From: Obrimoposthia wandeli
Taxonomy: Eukaryota
Direction: 5' to 3'
NCBI GenBank assembly: GCA_977020255.1
Contig: CDROCS010001564.1
Location: 62,001-120,849 of the forward strand
DNA: 58,849 bases
Shown here: positions 1,415 to 21,927 of the stretch, piece after piece
Layout: each line of letters begins with the position of its first letter
Position numbering within the stretch: the stretch's first letter is position 1
The notes under the pieces: model-generated
The model's input: the letters and a program-made list of their open reading frames with translations, nothing else
What the model was told of the DNA's origin: nothing
The model's database searches: none
Made by a program: the position numbers and the translations under genes

Positions 1415-1992
1415 TGTATTACGTATTATATTTTGTTGTGATCATCACTACATTATGGAATGAAGTTTTGAATGATCCACCGACATATTATCACTTTCAA
1501 AGTAGATTGATAAAAATAGACTCTGTTGAATTATTAATCTCAATAGATAGTTATATCCTTGGTATTAAATATGCTTCTCGGAAGATTGAAATCTCTGAAG
1601 GTTTCGAAAATAAACTCTCAAATGGTTTACTAAGGCTGTCACAGTTGAAAAGTGATAAATATGAATATTTAGATAGTGATTTATCGGTAATAGAAGAAAA
1701 TGTAAACTTTGATTTGTTGCTGAATATCGAAAATAGTTACCCAGAATATAAATTAAATGCAGACGTTAAAAATATTAAACCGGACTTTAGTGAAAGTTTA
1801 AACGTTTCTATTCGATATTTTGATAAAGAAGAATCAATTTTTGATAAGCATCTAGTTGCTCCTCATTACCCTGACTATTTTTGTAGAAGAGATGATTTTG
1901 GGAAGTTTAATGATTTCATTTTCTCCTGCACGCTCGAAAAAGGCCTTTTTCTTTCGGGGTATGAAACAATATTACGAAAGTTTTATGAGTAG
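1414..1992 (+). CDS. AT-rich hypothetical protein with N-terminal hydrophobic anchor
   Basis: GTG start overlaps the upstream TAG (TAGTG), suggesting translational coupling; no family recognised. Confidence 0.6.
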   Translation: MYYVLYFVVIITTLWNEVLNDPPTYYHFQSRLIKIDSVELLISIDSYILGIKYASRKIEISEGFENKLSNGLLRLSQLKSDKYEYLDSDLSVIEENVNFDLLLNIENSYPEYKLNADVKNIKPDFSESLNVSIRYFDKEESIFDKHLVAPHYPDYFCRRDDFGKFNDFIFSCTLEKGLFLSGYETILRKFYE

Positions 1993-2112
1993 TTGTTTTG
2001 ATTATGTAATTTAACTGCATTGGCTATTAACTTGAAGAGATAAATACCAATAGGTGAGGTTAATTATTCACACAGAATTTGAAGTGTAAAAATAATCGAT
2101 TATCTTAATTAG

Positions 2113-2286
2113 ACTATAGCGCAAAACACATCAAAAACGCTCAGAAAAATAGTAGGCCTGCGTAATATTGCAGTTCATGATTACCAAGCCTTAAATATAG
2201 ATATTGTCATTGCGGTAGTGAAGCATCACTTAACAGACTTCGAGCTATTTTGCGCAGAGATCAAAGTATTAAAGCAGCAAGACTAG
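2113..2286 (+). pseudogene. hepT: C-terminal remnant of a HepT (DUF86, HEPN RNase) toxin
   Basis: My translation: TIAQNTSKTLRKIVGLRNIAVHDYQALNIDIVIAVVKHHLTDFELFCAEIKVLKQQD*; has the RX4HXY motif; in-frame TAG at 2110-2112 and no start codon. Confidence 0.85.
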
Positions 2287-2297
2287 CCTTATTTATG

Positions 2298-2897
2298 TTA
2301 ACTGGGCGCTTGATGAATCAGTTCATCCGACCAAGCATCCAGTACCTTTCTAAAAGGCTTATCGAGCAACTCTAAATCAAACTGATCGAAAAGATTTTTA
2401 ATCTCTAATCCCAGTTCCGTATCCCCAGTAATCTTCAATTTACGATTAAAGAATAAGGTATCAGGATCGACCTTTTGTGATGCCATCAATACCAGGGCAT
2501 CCACAGACGCACTGAAAACCACATCAGGTTCTGTGCTGATCGATAAGGACTCAGCTTTGTCCATCATCACCAACTGTTGGCCTATTTTAGTGAAATACCA
2601 CTTTGCAGATAAATCTTTAATTTCAACTTCAACAACCTTGTCATTTAAAAAGTCGATCTCTCCATCCTCCATAAATGGCTGACTTAAGCGTTTAACTTGA
2701 TGTAAGACAAAGTAGTTCTCGACCTTAGTCGGCATAATCTTGTGCGCTACCGATAGCAGTGAAGCAGAATTTTCTACGATCTTTTGCTTAGCCCTCTTTA
2801 ATATTCGGCTTTCTTGTAGAAGGCGGATTGGTATTGCTTCATTAAGTAAAACACTATTTAAAACAGCCCTATTTGGCATCAGTTTTTGTAATAACAT
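2298..2897 (-). CDS. ubiT: SCP2-domain accessory factor of O2-independent ubiquinone synthesis
   Basis: GEIDFL...DPDTLFFNRKLKITGDTELGLEIKNL; divergent from ubiUV. Confidence 0.9.
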   Translation of the reverse strand: MLLQKLMPNRAVLNSVLLNEAIPIRLLQESRILKRAKQKIVENSASLLSVAHKIMPTKVENYFVLHQVKRLSQPFMEDGEIDFLNDKVVEVEIKDLSAKWYFTKIGQQLVMMDKAESLSISTEPDVVFSASVDALVLMASQKVDPDTLFFNRKLKITGDTELGLEIKNLFDQFDLELLDKPFRKVLDAWSDELIHQAPS

Positions 2898-2963
2898 AAA
2901 AGATCCACACGGCTCAAGGAGTTAGAATTTGAGTTTAGTCTACTGGACCTTGTTGTTGATGCC

Positions 2964-2977
2964 TTAACCAAGATCAA
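2964..2977. promoter_or_regulatory. FNR/Anr-like box in the ubiT-ubiU divergent promoter
   Basis: TTAAC-CAAG-ATCAA vs consensus TTGAT-N4-ATCAA; extra TTGAT half-site at 2956-2960; E. coli ubiTUV is FNR-controlled. Confidence 0.55.
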
Positions 2978-3027
2978 GAAACAGTATGGCGTTTTTAGGA
3001 ACTCTATAAGGCTAATATGGAATTGAT

Positions 3028-4020
3028 ATGGAACTATTAAGTCCCGCAGGCAGTTTACCTGCCCTTAAGGCGGCAGTTGATGAAGGCGCCGATGCGATTT
3101 ATCTCGGTCTAAAAGATGATACCAATGCGCGTCACTTCGCAGGTCTAAACTTTACCGATAAAACGATGGCTCAAGGGGTTAACTACGCCCATGATCGGAA
3201 TCGCCGAGTACATGTTGCGGTGAATACCTTTGCTCATCCAGACCGTAGTCAGGCCTGGTTCGACGCGGTAAAGAAGACTCATGATATGGGAGCTGATGTA
3301 TTAATAGCTTCTAATATCGCCGTTTTAGAATATGCCGCGACTCATTATCCTGATCTCGAATTACACCTATCCGTGCAAGCGGCCGCGACCAATGTAGCCG
3401 CGATTAACTTCTTCAAACAATTTGGTGTAAGCCGAGTTGTTTTACCCCGTGTGCTTTCTTATCAGCAGGTCGCCAATCTTGCTAAAGATACGGATATAGA
3501 ATTAGAAGTTTTTGCCTTTGGCAGTCTTTGCATCATGGCTGAGGGGCGCTGCTACCTATCGTCTTATATGACGGGAGAGTCTCCTAATACTGTAGGCGCT
3601 TGTTCTCCGGCTAAATTTGTTCGCTGGCAAGAAACGGATCAAGGATTAGAAAGTCGCTTAAACGATGTCTTGATCGATCGTTTTGCTGAAGGGGAAAACG
3701 CCGGTTATCCCACCTTATGCAAAGGCCGCTTCAATGTCGAAGGGGAAGTAACCCACGCCTTAGAGGAACCCACTAGTTTAAATACCTTAAGCCTATTACC
3801 TCAGCTGAATAATATCGGCATCAGTGCCTTGAAGATCGAAGGTCGTCAGCGTAGCCCAGCTTATACCCGACAAGTAACTAAGACTTGGCGCGCAGCGATT
3901 GATGCAATGAAGAAAAGCCCTGAAACTTTCAAAGTGCAGAAAGAGTGGGATCAATGTTTGAGTAGTTTGTCGGAAGGTTCGCAAACCACCTTAGGCGCTT
4001 ATGAACGGACTTGGCAATAA
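3028..4020 (+). CDS. ubiU: U32-family O2-independent ubiquinone hydroxylase subunit
   Basis: MELLSPAGSLPALKAAVDEGADAIY; Fe-S cysteines in FGSLCIMAEGRCYLSSY, GACSP, YPTLCKGRF; KIEGRQRSPAY. Confidence 0.95.
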   Translation: MELLSPAGSLPALKAAVDEGADAIYLGLKDDTNARHFAGLNFTDKTMAQGVNYAHDRNRRVHVAVNTFAHPDRSQAWFDAVKKTHDMGADVLIASNIAVLEYAATHYPDLELHLSVQAAATNVAAINFFKQFGVSRVVLPRVLSYQQVANLAKDTDIELEVFAFGSLCIMAEGRCYLSSYMTGESPNTVGACSPAKFVRWQETDQGLESRLNDVLIDRFAEGENAGYPTLCKGRFNVEGEVTHALEEPTSLNTLSLLPQLNNIGISALKIEGRQRSPAYTRQVTKTWRAAIDAMKKSPETFKVQKEWDQCLSSLSEGSQTTLGAYERTWQ

Positions 4021-4029
4021 GGAGTGGGT

Positions 4030-4902
4030 ATGGAATTTTCGATGGGTAATATCCAATTTTATTGGGATAAAGAAACGACATCCGACTTCTACCAAAAAGT
4101 TGCAGATTCAAGTGTTGAACATGTTTATCTAGGTGAGTCCGTTTGTTCAAAGCGGCGTGAACTCAGGCTGGATGATTGGATTGAGATAGGCCGTGAGCTA
4201 ACGAGTAAAGGCAAGTCTGTAGTGCTTTCGAGCCTCGCGTTATTGGAAGCTAAAAGTGAATTAGCAACGCTAAAGAAGGTATGCCTAAACGGTGAACTGA
4301 AAGTTGAGGCTAATGACTTTGGTGCGATAGAGATTTTATCTGAAGCTAAGATTCCCTTTATTGCGGGTGCGGCACTGAATATTTATAACCAGCATGATTT
4401 AAAAGTCTTATTAGATCGTGGTATGCAGCGTTGGGTCATTCCGGTTGAGTTATCCAGAGACTGGTTAGTGAATGTGATTGCGGGTTGCGAAGAACTGGGC
4501 ATTCGTGAACAGATAGAAACCGAAGTTTATGGTTATGGCTATTTGCCGTTAGCGTATTCAGCACGTTGTTTTACCGCGCGTTCGGAAGACAGGCCGAAAG
4601 ATCAATGTGCCCTTTGCTGCATTAAATATCCCGAAGGTCGCAAGATCGATAGTCAGGAAGGTTTGGAGCTGTTCCGTATGAATGGCATTCAAACCATGTC
4701 GGGCTCAATTCAAAACTTAATCAATGATTTACCCTCTATGGAAAGTTTAGTGGACATAGTACGAATTAGTCCACATTCGATGGAGGCGATTGATTGGGTT
4801 GATAAGTTTAGGAATGCTTTAGAGGATAAAACTCGTATTCCTCTAGAAGGCTTCTGCAATGGTTATTGGCATAAAATAGAAGGTATGAAGGCGATTCAAT
4901 AA
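4030..4902 (+). CDS. ubiV: U32-family O2-independent ubiquinone hydroxylase subunit
   Basis: YLGESVCSKRR; PLAYSARCFTAR; QCALCC; ends FCNGYWH. Confidence 0.95.
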   Translation: MEFSMGNIQFYWDKETTSDFYQKVADSSVEHVYLGESVCSKRRELRLDDWIEIGRELTSKGKSVVLSSLALLEAKSELATLKKVCLNGELKVEANDFGAIEILSEAKIPFIAGAALNIYNQHDLKVLLDRGMQRWVIPVELSRDWLVNVIAGCEELGIREQIETEVYGYGYLPLAYSARCFTARSEDRPKDQCALCCIKYPEGRKIDSQEGLELFRMNGIQTMSGSIQNLINDLPSMESLVDIVRISPHSMEAIDWVDKFRNALEDKTRIPLEGFCNGYWHKIEGMKAIQ

Positions 4903-4953
4903 TGCGAGATAGCCTTAAAATTGCCTAGTACCCTTTAGCAGCAACTAAAGCGA

Positions 4954-5889
4954 TTAGCCGTCTTGGTTAATTCGCTTTGTTAGTTCACTTAAAACATCAG
5001 AGTACTTGTCATTATTTACCTGACAGGTCCCTGCATTTCTATGACCGCCACCTTCATGCTCTAGGCAAAGTTCACCGATATGGGTTTTATGACTGCGGTT
5101 GATAATTGAACCGCCAATAGCGAATACTGTATTTTGCTTTTTCAGACCCCAGAGGACGTGGATTGAAATGTTCTGCTCAGGAAAAAGGGCATAAATCATA
5201 AAGCGGTTACCCGCATAGATGATTTCTTCATCACGTAAATCTAATACGACTAAATTATTATGCACAGAGGTACAGCGTTTTAATTGATCTTCAAATTGCT
5301 GTCGGTGGCTATTGTAGAGTTCGACCCTTTCTTTGACGTCTTCTAATTGTAAAATTTGCTCGATGTTATGGTCACGGCAATAATCAATAAGTTCCATCAT
5401 GAGCTGATAGTTGCTGACGCGGAATTCACGGAAACGGCCTAAACCCGTACGGGAATCCATCAAAAAGTTGAGTAATACCCAATCCTTCGGGTGAAGAATC
5501 TCTTCTTTACTAAACTGCGCAGAGTCGGATTTATCGACAGCATCCATCATCTCAACTGAGATTTCAGGGAAGCGTGTTCCACCGCCGTAATAATCGTAAA
5601 CAACGCGTGCCGCAGATGGGGCATCAACATCTATAATATGATTATCGGGATCGTTATCACCACGGCGTTTTATTTCGGATGCATGGTGGTCAAAGCTTAA
5701 ATGGCAGCCAGCAACATAAGGCAAGTTGGTGGTGATATCGTTGGCGCCAATATCAATAATGCCATCTTGCATATCTTTGGGATGAACAAAGAGAATGTCG
5801 TCGATCATCCCCAAGTCCTTGAAAAGAACGGCACAGACTAGGCCATCAAAATCACTGCGTGTTACTAACCGAAACTGTTGTTTTGCCAC
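4954..5889 (-). CDS. DHH-family phosphoesterase (exopolyphosphatase/nanoRNase-like)
   Basis: RSDFDG, FDHH and GGGHRNAGT motifs; GTG at 5889 preceded by GGAGAG. Confidence 0.85.
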   Translation of the reverse strand: MAKQQFRLVTRSDFDGLVCAVLFKDLGMIDDILFVHPKDMQDGIIDIGANDITTNLPYVAGCHLSFDHHASEIKRRGDNDPDNHIIDVDAPSAARVVYDYYGGGTRFPEISVEMMDAVDKSDSAQFSKEEILHPKDWVLLNFLMDSRTGLGRFREFRVSNYQLMMELIDYCRDHNIEQILQLEDVKERVELYNSHRQQFEDQLKRCTSVHNNLVVLDLRDEEIIYAGNRFMIYALFPEQNISIHVLWGLKKQNTVFAIGGSIINRSHKTHIGELCLEHEGGGHRNAGTCQVNNDKYSDVLSELTKRINQDG

Positions 5890-18824: not shown

Positions 18825-18840
18825 GCCGACATAGCTCAGC

Positions 18841-18872
<32 letters not shown>

Positions 18873-18900
18873 CCGAGTTCGACTCTTGGTGTCGGCACCA
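18825..18900 (+). tRNA. tRNA-Thr (anticodon TGT), CCA encoded
   Basis: GCCGACA/TGTCGGC acceptor stem, AGCTGGTAGAGC D arm, CTGAC-TTGTAAT-CAG anticodon arm, GTTCGA T loop; 76 nt. Confidence 0.97.
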
Positions 18901-18991: not shown

Positions 18992-19483
18992 CTAAAAATG
19001 CATTTTCATAGAAACAGAATAGCCATCCCCTGAATCTTGCTTTGATAAAGCGTATTGCCACTCCCCCGCTTCTGGTTCTCCTTGATAAATCCCCCATGCG
19101 GCTTCAGCTGCGACTTTAAGCACATCAACACTCACCACTTGGTCGCTGTTCAAGTGCACGTTATCAGCCCAATTACTGTAGGGATCATTTTGTTCCGACC
19201 ACTGCTGTTGCAAGTTATCGTCAGAAAGCTCATTGGCAAAGCAAGGCGAGAAGGTAAAAGGCGCGCATAAACAGGTTAAGCAAGCGGCACAAGGCTTAAG
19301 CCAGCTTTGACGACGTAGGGCTCTGTTGAGGTCTTTCTGCTCAATAAATCCTAGTGCCATTAAGCAATGGCCTACAGGTTGAGCATGCAGAGCTTGATAT
19401 GCAAGTGCGAGCTCTAGTTGTTGCTTTGAAATGACCTGGCGAGCTAATAATATTTGGCCTAGACGTATCTTAATATCAGCCAT
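18992..19483 (-). CDS. Hypothetical protein with N-terminal MshEN-like (c-di-GMP-binding-type) domain
   Basis: RLGQILLARQVISKQQLELALAYQ-ALHAQ-PVGHCLMALGFIEQKDLNRALRRQ fits the tandem 24-aa MshEN motif with some degeneracy. Confidence 0.7.
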   Translation of the reverse strand: MADIKIRLGQILLARQVISKQQLELALAYQALHAQPVGHCLMALGFIEQKDLNRALRRQSWLKPCAACLTCLCAPFTFSPCFANELSDDNLQQQWSEQNDPYSNWADNVHLNSDQVVSVDVLKVAAEAAWGIYQGEPEAGEWQYALSKQDSGDGYSVSMKMHF

Positions 19484-19677: not shown

Positions 19678-20019
19678 ATGATATCAACAAGCTGGCAGCA
19701 ACCCATAATATGGTTGGCTGAAAACATGCGCCCGCATAATAAAGAAATTGCTTTAGCGATGGTGGCGACCTTGTTGGTTATATTCGGAGATGTTATTAAT
19801 GGAGTGCTTCGGCGATTAGTCAGAAAACAGCCAATAATCTTAAGAATTTCTGCGTTTATTGCATTATGCGCATTTGGCTATGGCACATTATCCGTTTGGT
19901 TAACGCCACTATTATCTGACTTTTTACAAAGGCAAAGTTCGCAGGCTTATGTCGCAACAGTAGTCTTAAGCTTTTTAATCGTAGGGATCTTAGCGGAGCG
20001 TTTTCAGAAGACAAAATGA
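19678..20019 (+). CDS. DUF3392-family small membrane protein
   Basis: EIALAMVATLLVIFGDVIN...FIALCAFGYG; 3 TM, 113 aa. Confidence 0.75.
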   Translation: MISTSWQQPIIWLAENMRPHNKEIALAMVATLLVIFGDVINGVLRRLVRKQPIILRISAFIALCAFGYGTLSVWLTPLLSDFLQRQSSQAYVATVVLSFLIVGILAERFQKTK

Positions 20020-20075
20020 TTCAGATTAGGTATGGGAAGATAAAAAGAGGAAGTAGCGCATTATTCTAATCCGTT

Positions 20076-20218
20076 AGAAAATAAGACGGGAGAACATCCT
20101 GTTCAACCCGTCTCAGCACCCTAGCAGCCATCCAATAGCTAACATTCTTCCTTGAAGCAGTCCGTGGCAATATTGTTATCCTTAACCGTTACATCCTGTA
20201 ACGCTGCCGTCCTTGTGT
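20076..20218 (-). ncRNA. CsrB/RsmY/RsmZ-like CsrA(RsmA)-sequestering sRNA, copy 1 (ends approximate)
   Basis: Seven GGA motifs, mostly in hairpin loops (e.g. CGUUAC-AGGAU-GUAACG); terminator GAGACGGG...CCCGUCUU-AUUUUCU; extended -10 TGcTAACTT at 20224-20232. Confidence 0.8.
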
Positions 20219-20309
20219 GATTAAAGTTAGCAGAATGTAAAAAAGTGAAAAGGATGTATTTTCAAACAACATCTAGATAGTTAATTATATCAGTAATAAT
20301 ATCGTTTAA

Positions 20310-20322
20310 AATCAATATGTTA
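20310..20322. promoter_or_regulatory. IHF site upstream of sRNA copy 1
   Basis: AATCAA-TATG-TTA matches WATCAANNNNTTR; conserved in copy 2 while flanks diverge. Confidence 0.6.
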
Positions 20323-20386
20323 ACAATTATATTATTAATATTTGGCGAATAGATATAGGTAATTAGAGGGTTATTCCCACTCACTG

Positions 20387-20404
20387 TGTGAGATATATCG
20401 CACA
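20387..20404. promoter_or_regulatory. UvrY/GacA/VarA-like 18-bp inverted-repeat box, copy 1
   Basis: TGTGAGATATATCGCACA resembles the E. coli csrB UvrY box (TGTGAGAGATCTCTTACA, from recall); ~170-185 bp upstream of the predicted start. Confidence 0.6.
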
Positions 20405-20680
20405 CGCTAATCGGCTTATTTCGCACAAGTAAAAACCGGTTATTTGATGAAAAGGTAGCATAATGTAGTAACCGCATGTATCTGAGACTTACTGGGAAAA
20501 TTAACAATATTGGGATTTGCCAGTTTCATACCGTATGGATATCAATAATGTGAGCCTACGTTGAAGCAGATGCGTTAGGTTTTTGATTAGAAATACAGTT
20601 AGCGGAATATTTTTAGAAATTTAAATAGAATCGAAAGAGAGAAGGTAAAAAGAGGAAGTAGTACATTATTCTAATCCGTT

Positions 20681-20824
20681 AGAAAATAAGACGGGGAGAA
20701 CATCCTGTTCAACCCGTCTCAGCACCCTAGCAGCCATCCAATGGCTAACATTCTTCCTTGAAGCAGTCCGTGGCAATATTGTTATCCTTAACCGTTACAT
20801 CCTGTAACGCTGCCGTCCTTGTGG
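20681..20824 (-). ncRNA. CsrB/RsmY/RsmZ-like sRNA, copy 2 (ends approximate)
   Basis: Same seven GGA motifs and terminator; about three differences from copy 1, one turning a U-G pair into C-G. Confidence 0.8.
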
Positions 20825-20915
20825 GATTAAAGTTAGCAGAATGTAAAAAAGTGAAAAGGATGTATTTGATAATATTATCTGGCATGTTAATCCTATAAAT
20901 ATAAATATCCTTTAA

Positions 20916-20928
20916 AATCAATAACTTA
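20916..20928. promoter_or_regulatory. IHF site upstream of sRNA copy 2
   Basis: AATCAA-TAAC-TTA matches WATCAANNNNTTR. Confidence 0.6.
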
Positions 20929-20992
20929 ATATAAATATCAGTAGTTTTCGGCTAATCGAGTTAAGCAATTAGAGGGATATTCCCACTCGCCG

Positions 20993-21010
20993 CGTGAGAT
21001 ATATCGCACA
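20993..21010. promoter_or_regulatory. UvrY/GacA-like box, copy 2
   Basis: CGTGAGATATATCGCACA, 17/18 identical to the copy 1 box. Confidence 0.6.
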
Positions 21011-21102
21011 TGGTATGAGGCTTATTTCTTACAGGTAAAAAACGGTTGTTTTATGAAAGTTGACCATAATGTAGTAACAGCATGTATTTAAGGCACTACT
21101 GA

Positions 21103-21927
21103 GTGAATTCATTATATTGTTATTTAGCATCTGAAGGTCTCGTTTTTCTTAAACGCGGCTATTTACCGCTCATGATGCCAGCGCAATTACCTGAGCCTTG
21201 GTTACAAGATGGAAGCTGTTATCAAGCCATCAGTAAACCGACGTTATCGGCACAAGACTTTCGTCATTACTTGCAGCAGCAATATAAAAAGCTGCCGGAT
21301 CATTTACGTGAAATGGTTAATTTTGAGTATTTTGAAAAGCAGTCTCAAGGCCAACGCGCGAAAATAGAGCAATCTATGTTGGCACAAAATCAGTCGCTGC
21401 AAAGTGTGCAGCCTTTCTCATTAAAGCGAGTTAAAGACTGGCGCATATTATCGCTATTCAATCATTGGGATAGTGTGTCTTTATGGCATCGAAATGCCGC
21501 TGCTGGGCAAGGACTCGTTATAGAGTTTAATGTTGCAGAAAGTGGTTTTCAAACATCATCTTATAACGATCAAGCTCAGCACCTAGCGCCTGTTCAAGCA
21601 ACAGATAGCTGGCAGCCATTGGATGACCTGTATTATTTTTTTAATCGCCCTGAAGCTTTCGCTATGAGCAATGCAGATGTTGAATGGCGTCTATTGCGGA
21701 ATGTTAAGGCTGCAGATCGAATTATTGCGGTACAAAATGCAGAGCGAGCAATGTATCGGCTGCCGGCAAAATCAGTTAAGCGAATTATATTGGGCTATCG
21801 TTGCTCGACTGAATATTGCCTACAGGTGAAGACGTATCTTAGTCAGGATATTAATTACCGTCATGTAGCTTGCTTACAAGCTCAATTGGATCCAAGCACC
21901 CTGCGCTTACAGCAGGTCGCTATTTAA
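21103..21927 (+). CDS. Hypothetical protein, divergent DUF2971-like
   Basis: SLWHRNAAAGQGLVIEF, EWRLL and KRIILGYRC loosely match DUF2971 blocks. Confidence 0.5.
   Translation: MNSLYCYLASEGLVFLKRGYLPLMMPAQLPEPWLQDGSCYQAISKPTLSAQDFRHYLQQQYKKLPDHLREMVNFEYFEKQSQGQRAKIEQSMLAQNQSLQSVQPFSLKRVKDWRILSLFNHWDSVSLWHRNAAAGQGLVIEFNVAESGFQTSSYNDQAQHLAPVQATDSWQPLDDLYYFFNRPEAFAMSNADVEWRLLRNVKAADRIIAVQNAERAMYRLPAKSVKRIILGYRCSTEYCLQVKTYLSQDINYRHVACLQAQLDPSTLRLQQVAI

Follow-up and report, generated by a model that had tools for sequence, protein, structure and literature searches.

The closest described systems are the genes of the Csr/Rsm sponge RNAs. In Escherichia coli and Salmonella, phosphorylated UvrY binds an 18-nt palindrome, TGTGAGAGATCTCTTACA, centred at -183/-182 of csrB; an IHF site separates this palindrome from the promoter, and a further conserved element follows 5 bp downstream of the palindrome (PMC4682653). 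A tandem duplication is known in Pseudomonas, where rsmX-1 and rsmX-2 each possess their own upstream activating sequence (PMC7911923). For Vibrio (e.g. V. tasmaniensis LGP32), a published account describes a duplication of csrB and sibling Csr sponge RNAs (PMC6262261). A literature search retrieved no account of Csr sRNAs in Oleispira or its relatives, and no binding or genetic data for the genus.

The window (the whole stretch of DNA analysed here, 58,849 nt) carries on its minus strand two tandem repeats, each of which is very probably an independent gene for a Csr/Rsm-type sponge RNA of Oleispira of ~143 nt. The resemblance to csrB covers the regulatory layout: a TGTGAGA...TCTCACA-type 18-nt palindrome stands about 180 bp upstream in both cases (-177.5 in Oleispira, -183/-182 in csrB), an IHF-type site precedes the promoter and a further element is found 5 bp past the palindrome. 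In E. coli csrB this extra element is partly conserved, with the spacing observed here for AGTGGGAAT (PMC4682653). GGA motifs are numerous in the hairpin loops of either RNA, and CsrA is encoded by both organisms; csrB is activated by BarA-UvrY. They are unlike in size, the Oleispira RNA having about 143 nt and 7 GGA whereas the CsrB model spans 356 positions with many more sites. The size class is rather that of the Pseudomonas RsmX/Y/Z RNAs (RF02144, RF00195 and RF00166), with 133 model positions for RsmZ, 121 for RsmY and 110 nt for rsmX-2 (PMC7911923). Several unpaired GGA and a palindromic upstream activating sequence, that of Oleispira being a candidate, are also shared with these RNAs, although no sequence homology to them is detectable. 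The palindrome of the Pseudomonas rsm genes stands much nearer to the promoter than in Oleispira. Members of rsmX pairs are 75-81% identical, as compared to about 98% for the two Oleispira copies. The Vibrio case, likened here by its description, is also that of a marine gammaproteobacterium with sponge siblings derived from gene duplication (PMC6262261).

The window is contained in contig C1564 of a 1.35 Gb assembly of 6912 contigs, and the gene set around the sRNA pair is bacterial (TRAP transporter subunits, TrmH, CysZ and response regulators). The TrmH protein is 98% identical to that of a MAG named Oleispira sp. and 83-92% identical to those of ten other Oleispira/Thalassolituus genomes; the sRNA pair is therefore located on an Oleispira contig carried within a larger assembly. 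Other bacteria are included as well, because the six CsrA matches of the assembly fall on six different contigs, two of them at megabase-scale coordinates. The contigs named for the bacterial content of the assembly are C4441, C506, C253, C1295, C2171, C2834 and C3916. A second Oleispira strain is represented by C4441, which displays a single sRNA copy and the same flanking genes. Two further genes were noted near the pair: a tRNA-Thr(UGU) and, between this tRNA and the DUF3392 gene, the gene of a 163-aa protein whose MshE-type cyclic-di-GMP-binding motif domain scores 51 bits (cut-off 38). On the other side, a 274-aa ORF divergent from copy B lacks any Pfam or NCBIfam match; since relatives share 65-85% of its nucleotides, it is probably a genuine gene whose product matches no family. 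The coordinates of all features are collected in Table 1.

Table 1. Features of the tandem sRNA locus and of related loci (window positions unless a locus is named; distances in the last column are relative to the predicted start).
Feature	Position	Strand	Remarks
sRNA, copy A	20076-20218	-	about 143 nt, predicted 5' end; 193.8 bits to model R1
GGA motifs of copy A (first G)	20212, 20196, 20181, 20163, 20151, 20133, 20099	-	n = 7
sRNA, copy B	20681-20824	-	about 144 nt; 7 GGA; 191.1 bits to model R1
Core promoter block, copy A	20220-20252	-	33 nt; same in both copies; nearly invariant across the genus
Core promoter block, copy B	20826-20858	-	identical to the copy A block
IHF-consensus-like TAACATATTGATT, copy A	20310-20322	-	about -98; between inverted repeat and promoter
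IHF-consensus-like TAAGTTATTGATT, copy B	20916-20928	-	about -98
Conserved AGTGGGAAT element, copy A	20373-20381	-	5 bp downstream of the inverted repeat
AGTGGGAAT element, copy B counterpart	20979-20987
18-nt inverted repeat TGTGCGATATATCTCACA, copy A	20387-20404		candidate GacA/UvrY site; centre -177.5
18-nt inverted repeat, copy B	20993-21010		17/18 bases as in copy A; centre -177.5
Conserved half-site-like TGTGCGAAAT, copy A	20418-20427	-	13 bp upstream of the inverted repeat
Half-site-like TGTAAGAAAT, copy B	21024-21033		counterpart of TGTGCGAAAT
Small 3' hairpin UUCUAA-CGGA-UUAGAA, copy A	20064-20079	-	overlaps the terminator U-tract
Small 3' hairpin, copy B	20669-20684
Pyrimidine element CUUCCUCUUUUUA, copy A	20041-20053	-	downstream of copy A
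CUUCCUCUUUUUA element, copy B	20646-20658		downstream of copy B
Decayed duplicate of the DUF3392 3' end, with downstream spacer	20545-20640	-	unit B
tRNA-Thr(UGU)	18825-18900
163-aa protein, MshE-type motif domain	18992-19483	-
274-aa ORF	21103-21927	+
Double R1 hit in genome G044	G044:C29, L048 1501-1649 and 2405-2516		same strand
124-aa CsrA-like ORF in genome G048	L055, G048:C1:928008-928295		second CsrA-type ORF
Aligned DUF3392 end, tandem metagenome lineage	L064 2693-2805; L065 1934-2046

The first-pass annotation, made from the letters of the window, had described two tandem and near-identical minus-strand repeats, each with seven GGA motifs in ~145 nt that lie mostly in hairpin loops, and about three sites differing between the copies. 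Both repeats were found where it had placed them, as a direct repeat with a period of 605-606 bp whose RNAs are about 98% identical. The GGA count was reproduced, each copy (143-144 nt) holding 7 as compared to a window-wide mean of 1.1-1.2 per 145 nt. When both strands of the 58.8 kb window were scanned, stretches with at least 7 GGA per 145 nt were confined to the two copies; with 7 GGA reached in about 3% of dinucleotide-preserving shuffles, the enrichment is moderate. Alignment of the copies in the RNA sense yielded three differences, namely the first base (A in copy A, C in copy B), an AGCU (A) versus AGCC (B) in a hairpin stem where pairing is kept as U-G or C-G, and the 3' arm of the terminator, in which copy B has one additional C. 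In the consensus fold, two short 5' hairpins with GGA loops are followed by a third GGA-loop hairpin and by the terminator. Four of the seven GGA thus occupy hairpin loops (terminator loop included) and two are found in unpaired linkers, while the seventh lies at the 5' end inside a closing helix of weak support. The sequence ACAGGAUGU is read in two of the four GGA hairpin loops and constitutes the inner loop of the terminator hairpin; such loops are close to the high-affinity CsrA ligand. When a single sequence is folded, its gain in stability over shuffles is only modest (z = -1.1 to -1.6).

The intrinsic terminator proposed at first reading is supported as well. Its stem displays three compensatory pairs in the genus alignment, although a simple promoter/terminator consensus scan overlooked it because the stem holds an internal loop; the U-tract is interrupted (UUAUUUUCU). 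No conserved ORF extends over the sRNA, and the neighbouring genes are convergent and divergent. ORFs of 81 aa (20262-20507, minus strand), 58 aa (20745-20921, minus strand) and 46 aa (20758-20898, plus strand) were considered as genes and rejected, their DNA diverging with indels or having no counterpart in the other copy.

The sRNA promoter was called on conservation in place of the consensus scan, which had passed over it; its hexamers match weakly. An extended -10 had been proposed upstream of each repeat. This reading is plausible, the sequence TGcTAACTT being present in the core promoter block, but it is one of two plausible promoter readings, with TTTAAT as an alternative -10 in the same block. 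Further upstream, the palindrome was searched with up to 3 mismatches: a single occurrence was found in the single-contig 4.4 Mb Oleispira genome G048 and a single one in genome G001, in both cases solely upstream of the sRNA. It is retained with 0-1 half-site mismatches in 14 of 17 distant orthologues. This box is a candidate site through which GacA/UvrY would drive the sRNA gene. The element at about -98 of copy A, TAACATATTGATT, matches YAANNNNTTGATW, the IHF consensus; the site fits this consensus in 12 of the 14 aligned sequences.

Eleven full Oleispira/Thalassolituus loci, reached via TrmH, possess one sRNA copy each, with 88-97% identity to the RNA of the window and a constant position between the convergent DUF3392 gene and the divergent 274-aa ORF. 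The RNA and the 33-nt block are nearly invariant, and the upstream DNA between the palindrome region and the core promoter is 52-76% identical. A covariance model built from the genus sequences, R1, returned one hit per genome in 58 of the 86 genomes of the GTDB family. As an exception, a genome of another genus of this family (G044) gave two R1 hits on the same strand, 900 bp apart, which may reflect an independent tandem duplication at the same locus. Covariation across related genomes had been suggested as a check in the first-pass annotation and was indeed observed, in the terminator stem as well as in a model-fitted alignment of 33 hits, where 93.7% of cells pair (about 40% with slid partners) and both sides change in 32 of 42 pairs; the latter is to be read as support and not as proof, because an alignment fitted to the model structure favours that structure.

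Distant hits have a tRNA-Thr and DUF3392 neighbourhood in common, the tRNA being located within about 0.5-1.2 kb of the sRNA. The matched part of the distant orthologues contains 4-12 GGA, with at least 6 in 16 of 17 sequences, and a common 3' module accompanies hairpins which are otherwise unlike in sequence. As judged from these alignments, the feature conserved across orthologues is the GGA motif. A family-wide model, R2, was then run against 151 genomes of the order. Its hits stay within the GTDB family of the sRNA, apart from two weak cross-hits in other families, and wider homology is therefore not supported; both cross-hits are GGA-rich RNAs, have a GacA-type palindrome upstream and reach sub-threshold RsmZ scores.

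The duplicated unit measures 606 bp: about 300 bp of it precede the RNA and about 130 bp follow it, and the DUF3392 3' end is thereby included. The decayed duplicate of this end in unit B is about 50-73% identical, per alignment block and with indels, to its counterpart at 19945-20040. The divergence of the upstream spacer seen at first reading was recovered, with about 63-82% identity between the regulatory spacers of the units as compared to about 98% for the RNA and 100% for the core promoter. The palindrome-to-promoter stretch is about 69% identical between A and B, and the 3' extension about 94%. A gapped search pattern that joined a terminator loop to the 5' end of the following copy retrieved two metagenome contigs with the same tandem arrangement. 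Over 2 kb, these contigs are colinear with the window (85% identity), and the nearest single-copy genome is no closer to it than they are. They carry the same marks, i.e. AGCU without the extra C in copy A and AGCC with the extra C in copy B; one metagenome copy also displays a compensatory terminator change. Because two independent metagenome contigs share both the arrangement and the copy-specific marks, the duplication is inherited and not a product of mis-assembly, and the local duplication initially proposed is real, being present in three independent assemblies. The shared marks therefore place the duplication before the split of the lineages, with copies that were not homogenised. On the available sequences, the event is assigned to the common ancestor of this strain and of one metagenomic lineage. 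The 13 other species representatives of the genus are all single-copy (13/13), repeat collapse being possible in short-read MAGs. Both copies are probably expressed, since promoter, palindrome and RNA are intact in each. In the tandem metagenome lineage, alignment of the DUF3392 gene is confined to its last 114 nt and the distance to the next gene is about 190 bp shorter; DUF3392 may be truncated there.

When the window was compared with Rfam, no Csr/Rsm family matched, either at the gathering threshold or at E<=10; matches to snoR99 and Chlorobi-RRM were discarded as chance. Three Oleispira genomes were also queried: the CsrB model (RF00018, threshold 71 bits) gave no match, and the RsmZ (RF00166, 44 bits) and RsmY (RF00195, 57 bits) models yielded at most one 23-bit match, located elsewhere in the genome. 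In sister genera, longer orthologues from the same locus scored 55.7, 31.2 and 25.9 bits with the CsrB model (threshold 71). On sequence grounds, the sRNA most likely belongs to the Csr/Rsm sponge functional class (Rfam clan CL00106) and, by score, to no curated family, and this absence of any curated match fits the poorly described family that had been announced.

The partner genes are at hand. A canonical CsrA is encoded in Oleispira G001 and G048, and CsrA matches are present in the host assembly, where they are not assigned to Oleispira contigs; CsrA scores 91-93 bits in the three. A UvrY/SirA/GacA equivalog adjoins uvrC in Oleispira (305.7 bits, cut-off 280), with an 88% identical homologue in the host assembly. 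Genome G048 contains a second ORF of 124 aa with two partial CsrA-domain matches, resembling a CsrA-like protein that is split or duplicated internally. The computable predictions of the Rsm/Csr-sponge reading of the first-pass annotation were all borne out, with a GGA-rich conserved unit, compensated helices, a palindrome with an IHF-like site, the genes for CsrA and GacA, no coverage by a curated Rfam family and a local duplication.

Two elements are located just downstream of the U-tract. The loop of the small 3' hairpin would provide an eighth GGA, if transcribed. About 10 nt past this hairpin, the pyrimidine element CUUCCUCUUUUUA is complementary to an AGGAAG motif of the sRNA. Both the hairpin (CGGA or AGGA loop) and CUUCCUCUUUUUA are conserved within the genus and not beyond. 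The long-range AGGAAG:CUUCCU helix proposed by RNAalifold was rejected, being without compensatory support and broken in the two most divergent sequences, and was excluded from the covariance models. A pairing of GGUGC with the segment following the small 3' hairpin was rejected as well, as it is not kept in other species.

Signals of expression were searched in public data. The exact strain is absent from all sequencing runs searched. Marine metatranscriptomes contained 24-32% of the sampled words, a figure that fits the conserved RNA of relatives. Logan contigs from four marine metatranscriptome studies, placed on 19900-20450, span the RNA body, with no coverage upstream of 20236; such contigs originate from relatives and carry neither strand, ends nor level, and DNA carry-over into RNA libraries is possible. 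In run X3, the summed depth of the strand-less contigs amounts to 1500-5300 on 20128-20222, with a peak on the 5' half of the sRNA. Contigs in two runs end at 20206, abutting the Illumina adapter, which resembles the end of a molecule, 12 nt inside the predicted start; the same two contigs also run through the terminator into the convergent DUF3392 region. This coverage is consistent with, and does not prove, an abundant transcript. In one high-depth X3 contig, 20216 is linked back to 20174 through 18 intervening foreign letters, which suggests a relative whose sRNA has an extra repeated GGA-hairpin module.

The mechanism that we propose can be summarized as follows. Phosphorylated GacA/UvrY would bind the 18-nt palindrome centred at -177.5, and an IHF-type bend at about -98 would bring the response regulator to the invariant core promoter. 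The transcript, ended by the hairpin terminator, would display 7 GGA, four of them in hairpin loops, and several CsrA dimers would be titrated off their mRNA targets by the sRNA. The second copy would permit a higher maximum sponge output or some regulatory divergence. In this scheme we infer CsrA binding, the control by GacA and IHF, the exact transcript ends and the dosage effect.

A real RNA that is not a CsrA sponge, e.g. an Hfq-type base-pairing sRNA or the ligand of another protein, in which the GGA motifs would be incidental, is improbable. No Rfam Csr/Rsm model recognises the sRNA, the GGA enrichment reaches only about p=0.03 against dinucleotide shuffles, and a conserved pyrimidine element is located downstream, all of which would suit such an RNA. 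The GGA are nevertheless kept across orthologues whose hairpins otherwise differ, the only GacA-type palindrome of the genome stands upstream of the sRNA and the loops match ACAGGAUGU; a resemblance to CsrB and RsmZ is seen in orthologues and cross-hits, and CsrA is present while the CsrB, RsmY and RsmZ models found no other sponge candidate in three Oleispira genomes. Even less credit can be given to a conserved block that acts mainly in cis, as a bidirectional terminator, a 3' UTR or an antisense element for the DUF3392 gene. This gene is convergent on the sRNA across the whole family, and the two metatranscriptome contigs that pass the terminator into its region would be in keeping with such a role; but copy B has no intact DUF3392 gene downstream and is conserved in two lineages regardless, transcription of the minus strand is indicated by the promoter and palindrome conserved upstream, and the X3 depth peaks on the 5' half of the sRNA.

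The tandem arrangement calls for separate consideration. Mis-assembly, which the first-pass annotation had itself raised against the pair, was checked. An artefact in which one locus is represented twice, or in which the alleles of two strains are joined head to tail, is hardly conceivable, even in an assembly holding at least two Oleispira strains and with 13/13 species-representative genomes of the genus being single-copy: the units differ by 18-37% across the regulatory spacer, the decayed and indel-ridden DUF3392 3' fragment of unit B would not occur in the allele of another strain, and the two independent metagenome contigs, colinear over 2 kb at about 85% identity, carry the same marks. 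The metagenome contigs and the divergence between units lead to the rejection of this explanation. A more serious possibility, though we do not favour it, accepts both copies as functional sponges and proposes that they are kept through diverged regulation or stability instead of a simple doubling of dosage. The copy-specific differences are fixed and common to two lineages, the palindrome-promoter stretch is only about 69% identical between the copies, and differential expression is known for rsmX-1/rsmX-2 (PMC7911923) and for the Vibrio csrB copies (PMC6262261). On the other hand, palindrome, IHF-like site and core promoter are the same and the RNAs differ at three positions.

With two sponge genes of the Csr/Rsm type as the preferred reading, a broader and speculative scenario, rather unlikely as a whole, can be formulated. 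The locus would be the single ancestral Csr sponge gene of a marine Oceanospirillales-type family, composed of a csrB-type promoter and a fixed 3' module (CUAGGGUGCUG and the GGA-loop terminator), before which GGA hairpins would have been gained or lost; in one Oleispira clade, tandem siblings would have been long held apart by copy-specific changes, and the 3' extension of the genus (eighth GGA hairpin and anti-GGA CUUCCU) would tune CsrA capacity. If true, an ancestral single sponge locus would offer a compact natural system for the evolution of sponge capacity. The gene itself is, as read from its sequence, of an ordinary kind and leaves the understanding of Csr/Rsm unchanged, tandem rsm duplication being already known in Pseudomonas. 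In practice, R2 is usable for sRNA annotation across the GTDB family, and single-copy and tandem-copy lineages constitute a natural pair for the effect of a second sponge gene. Oleispira and Thalassolituus are key cold-water oil degraders. An arm of a global regulatory circuit was missing from their annotations, because CsrA and GacA are encoded and curated RNA families find no sponge; the locus described here likely supplies this missing Csr component of Oleispira/Thalassolituus.
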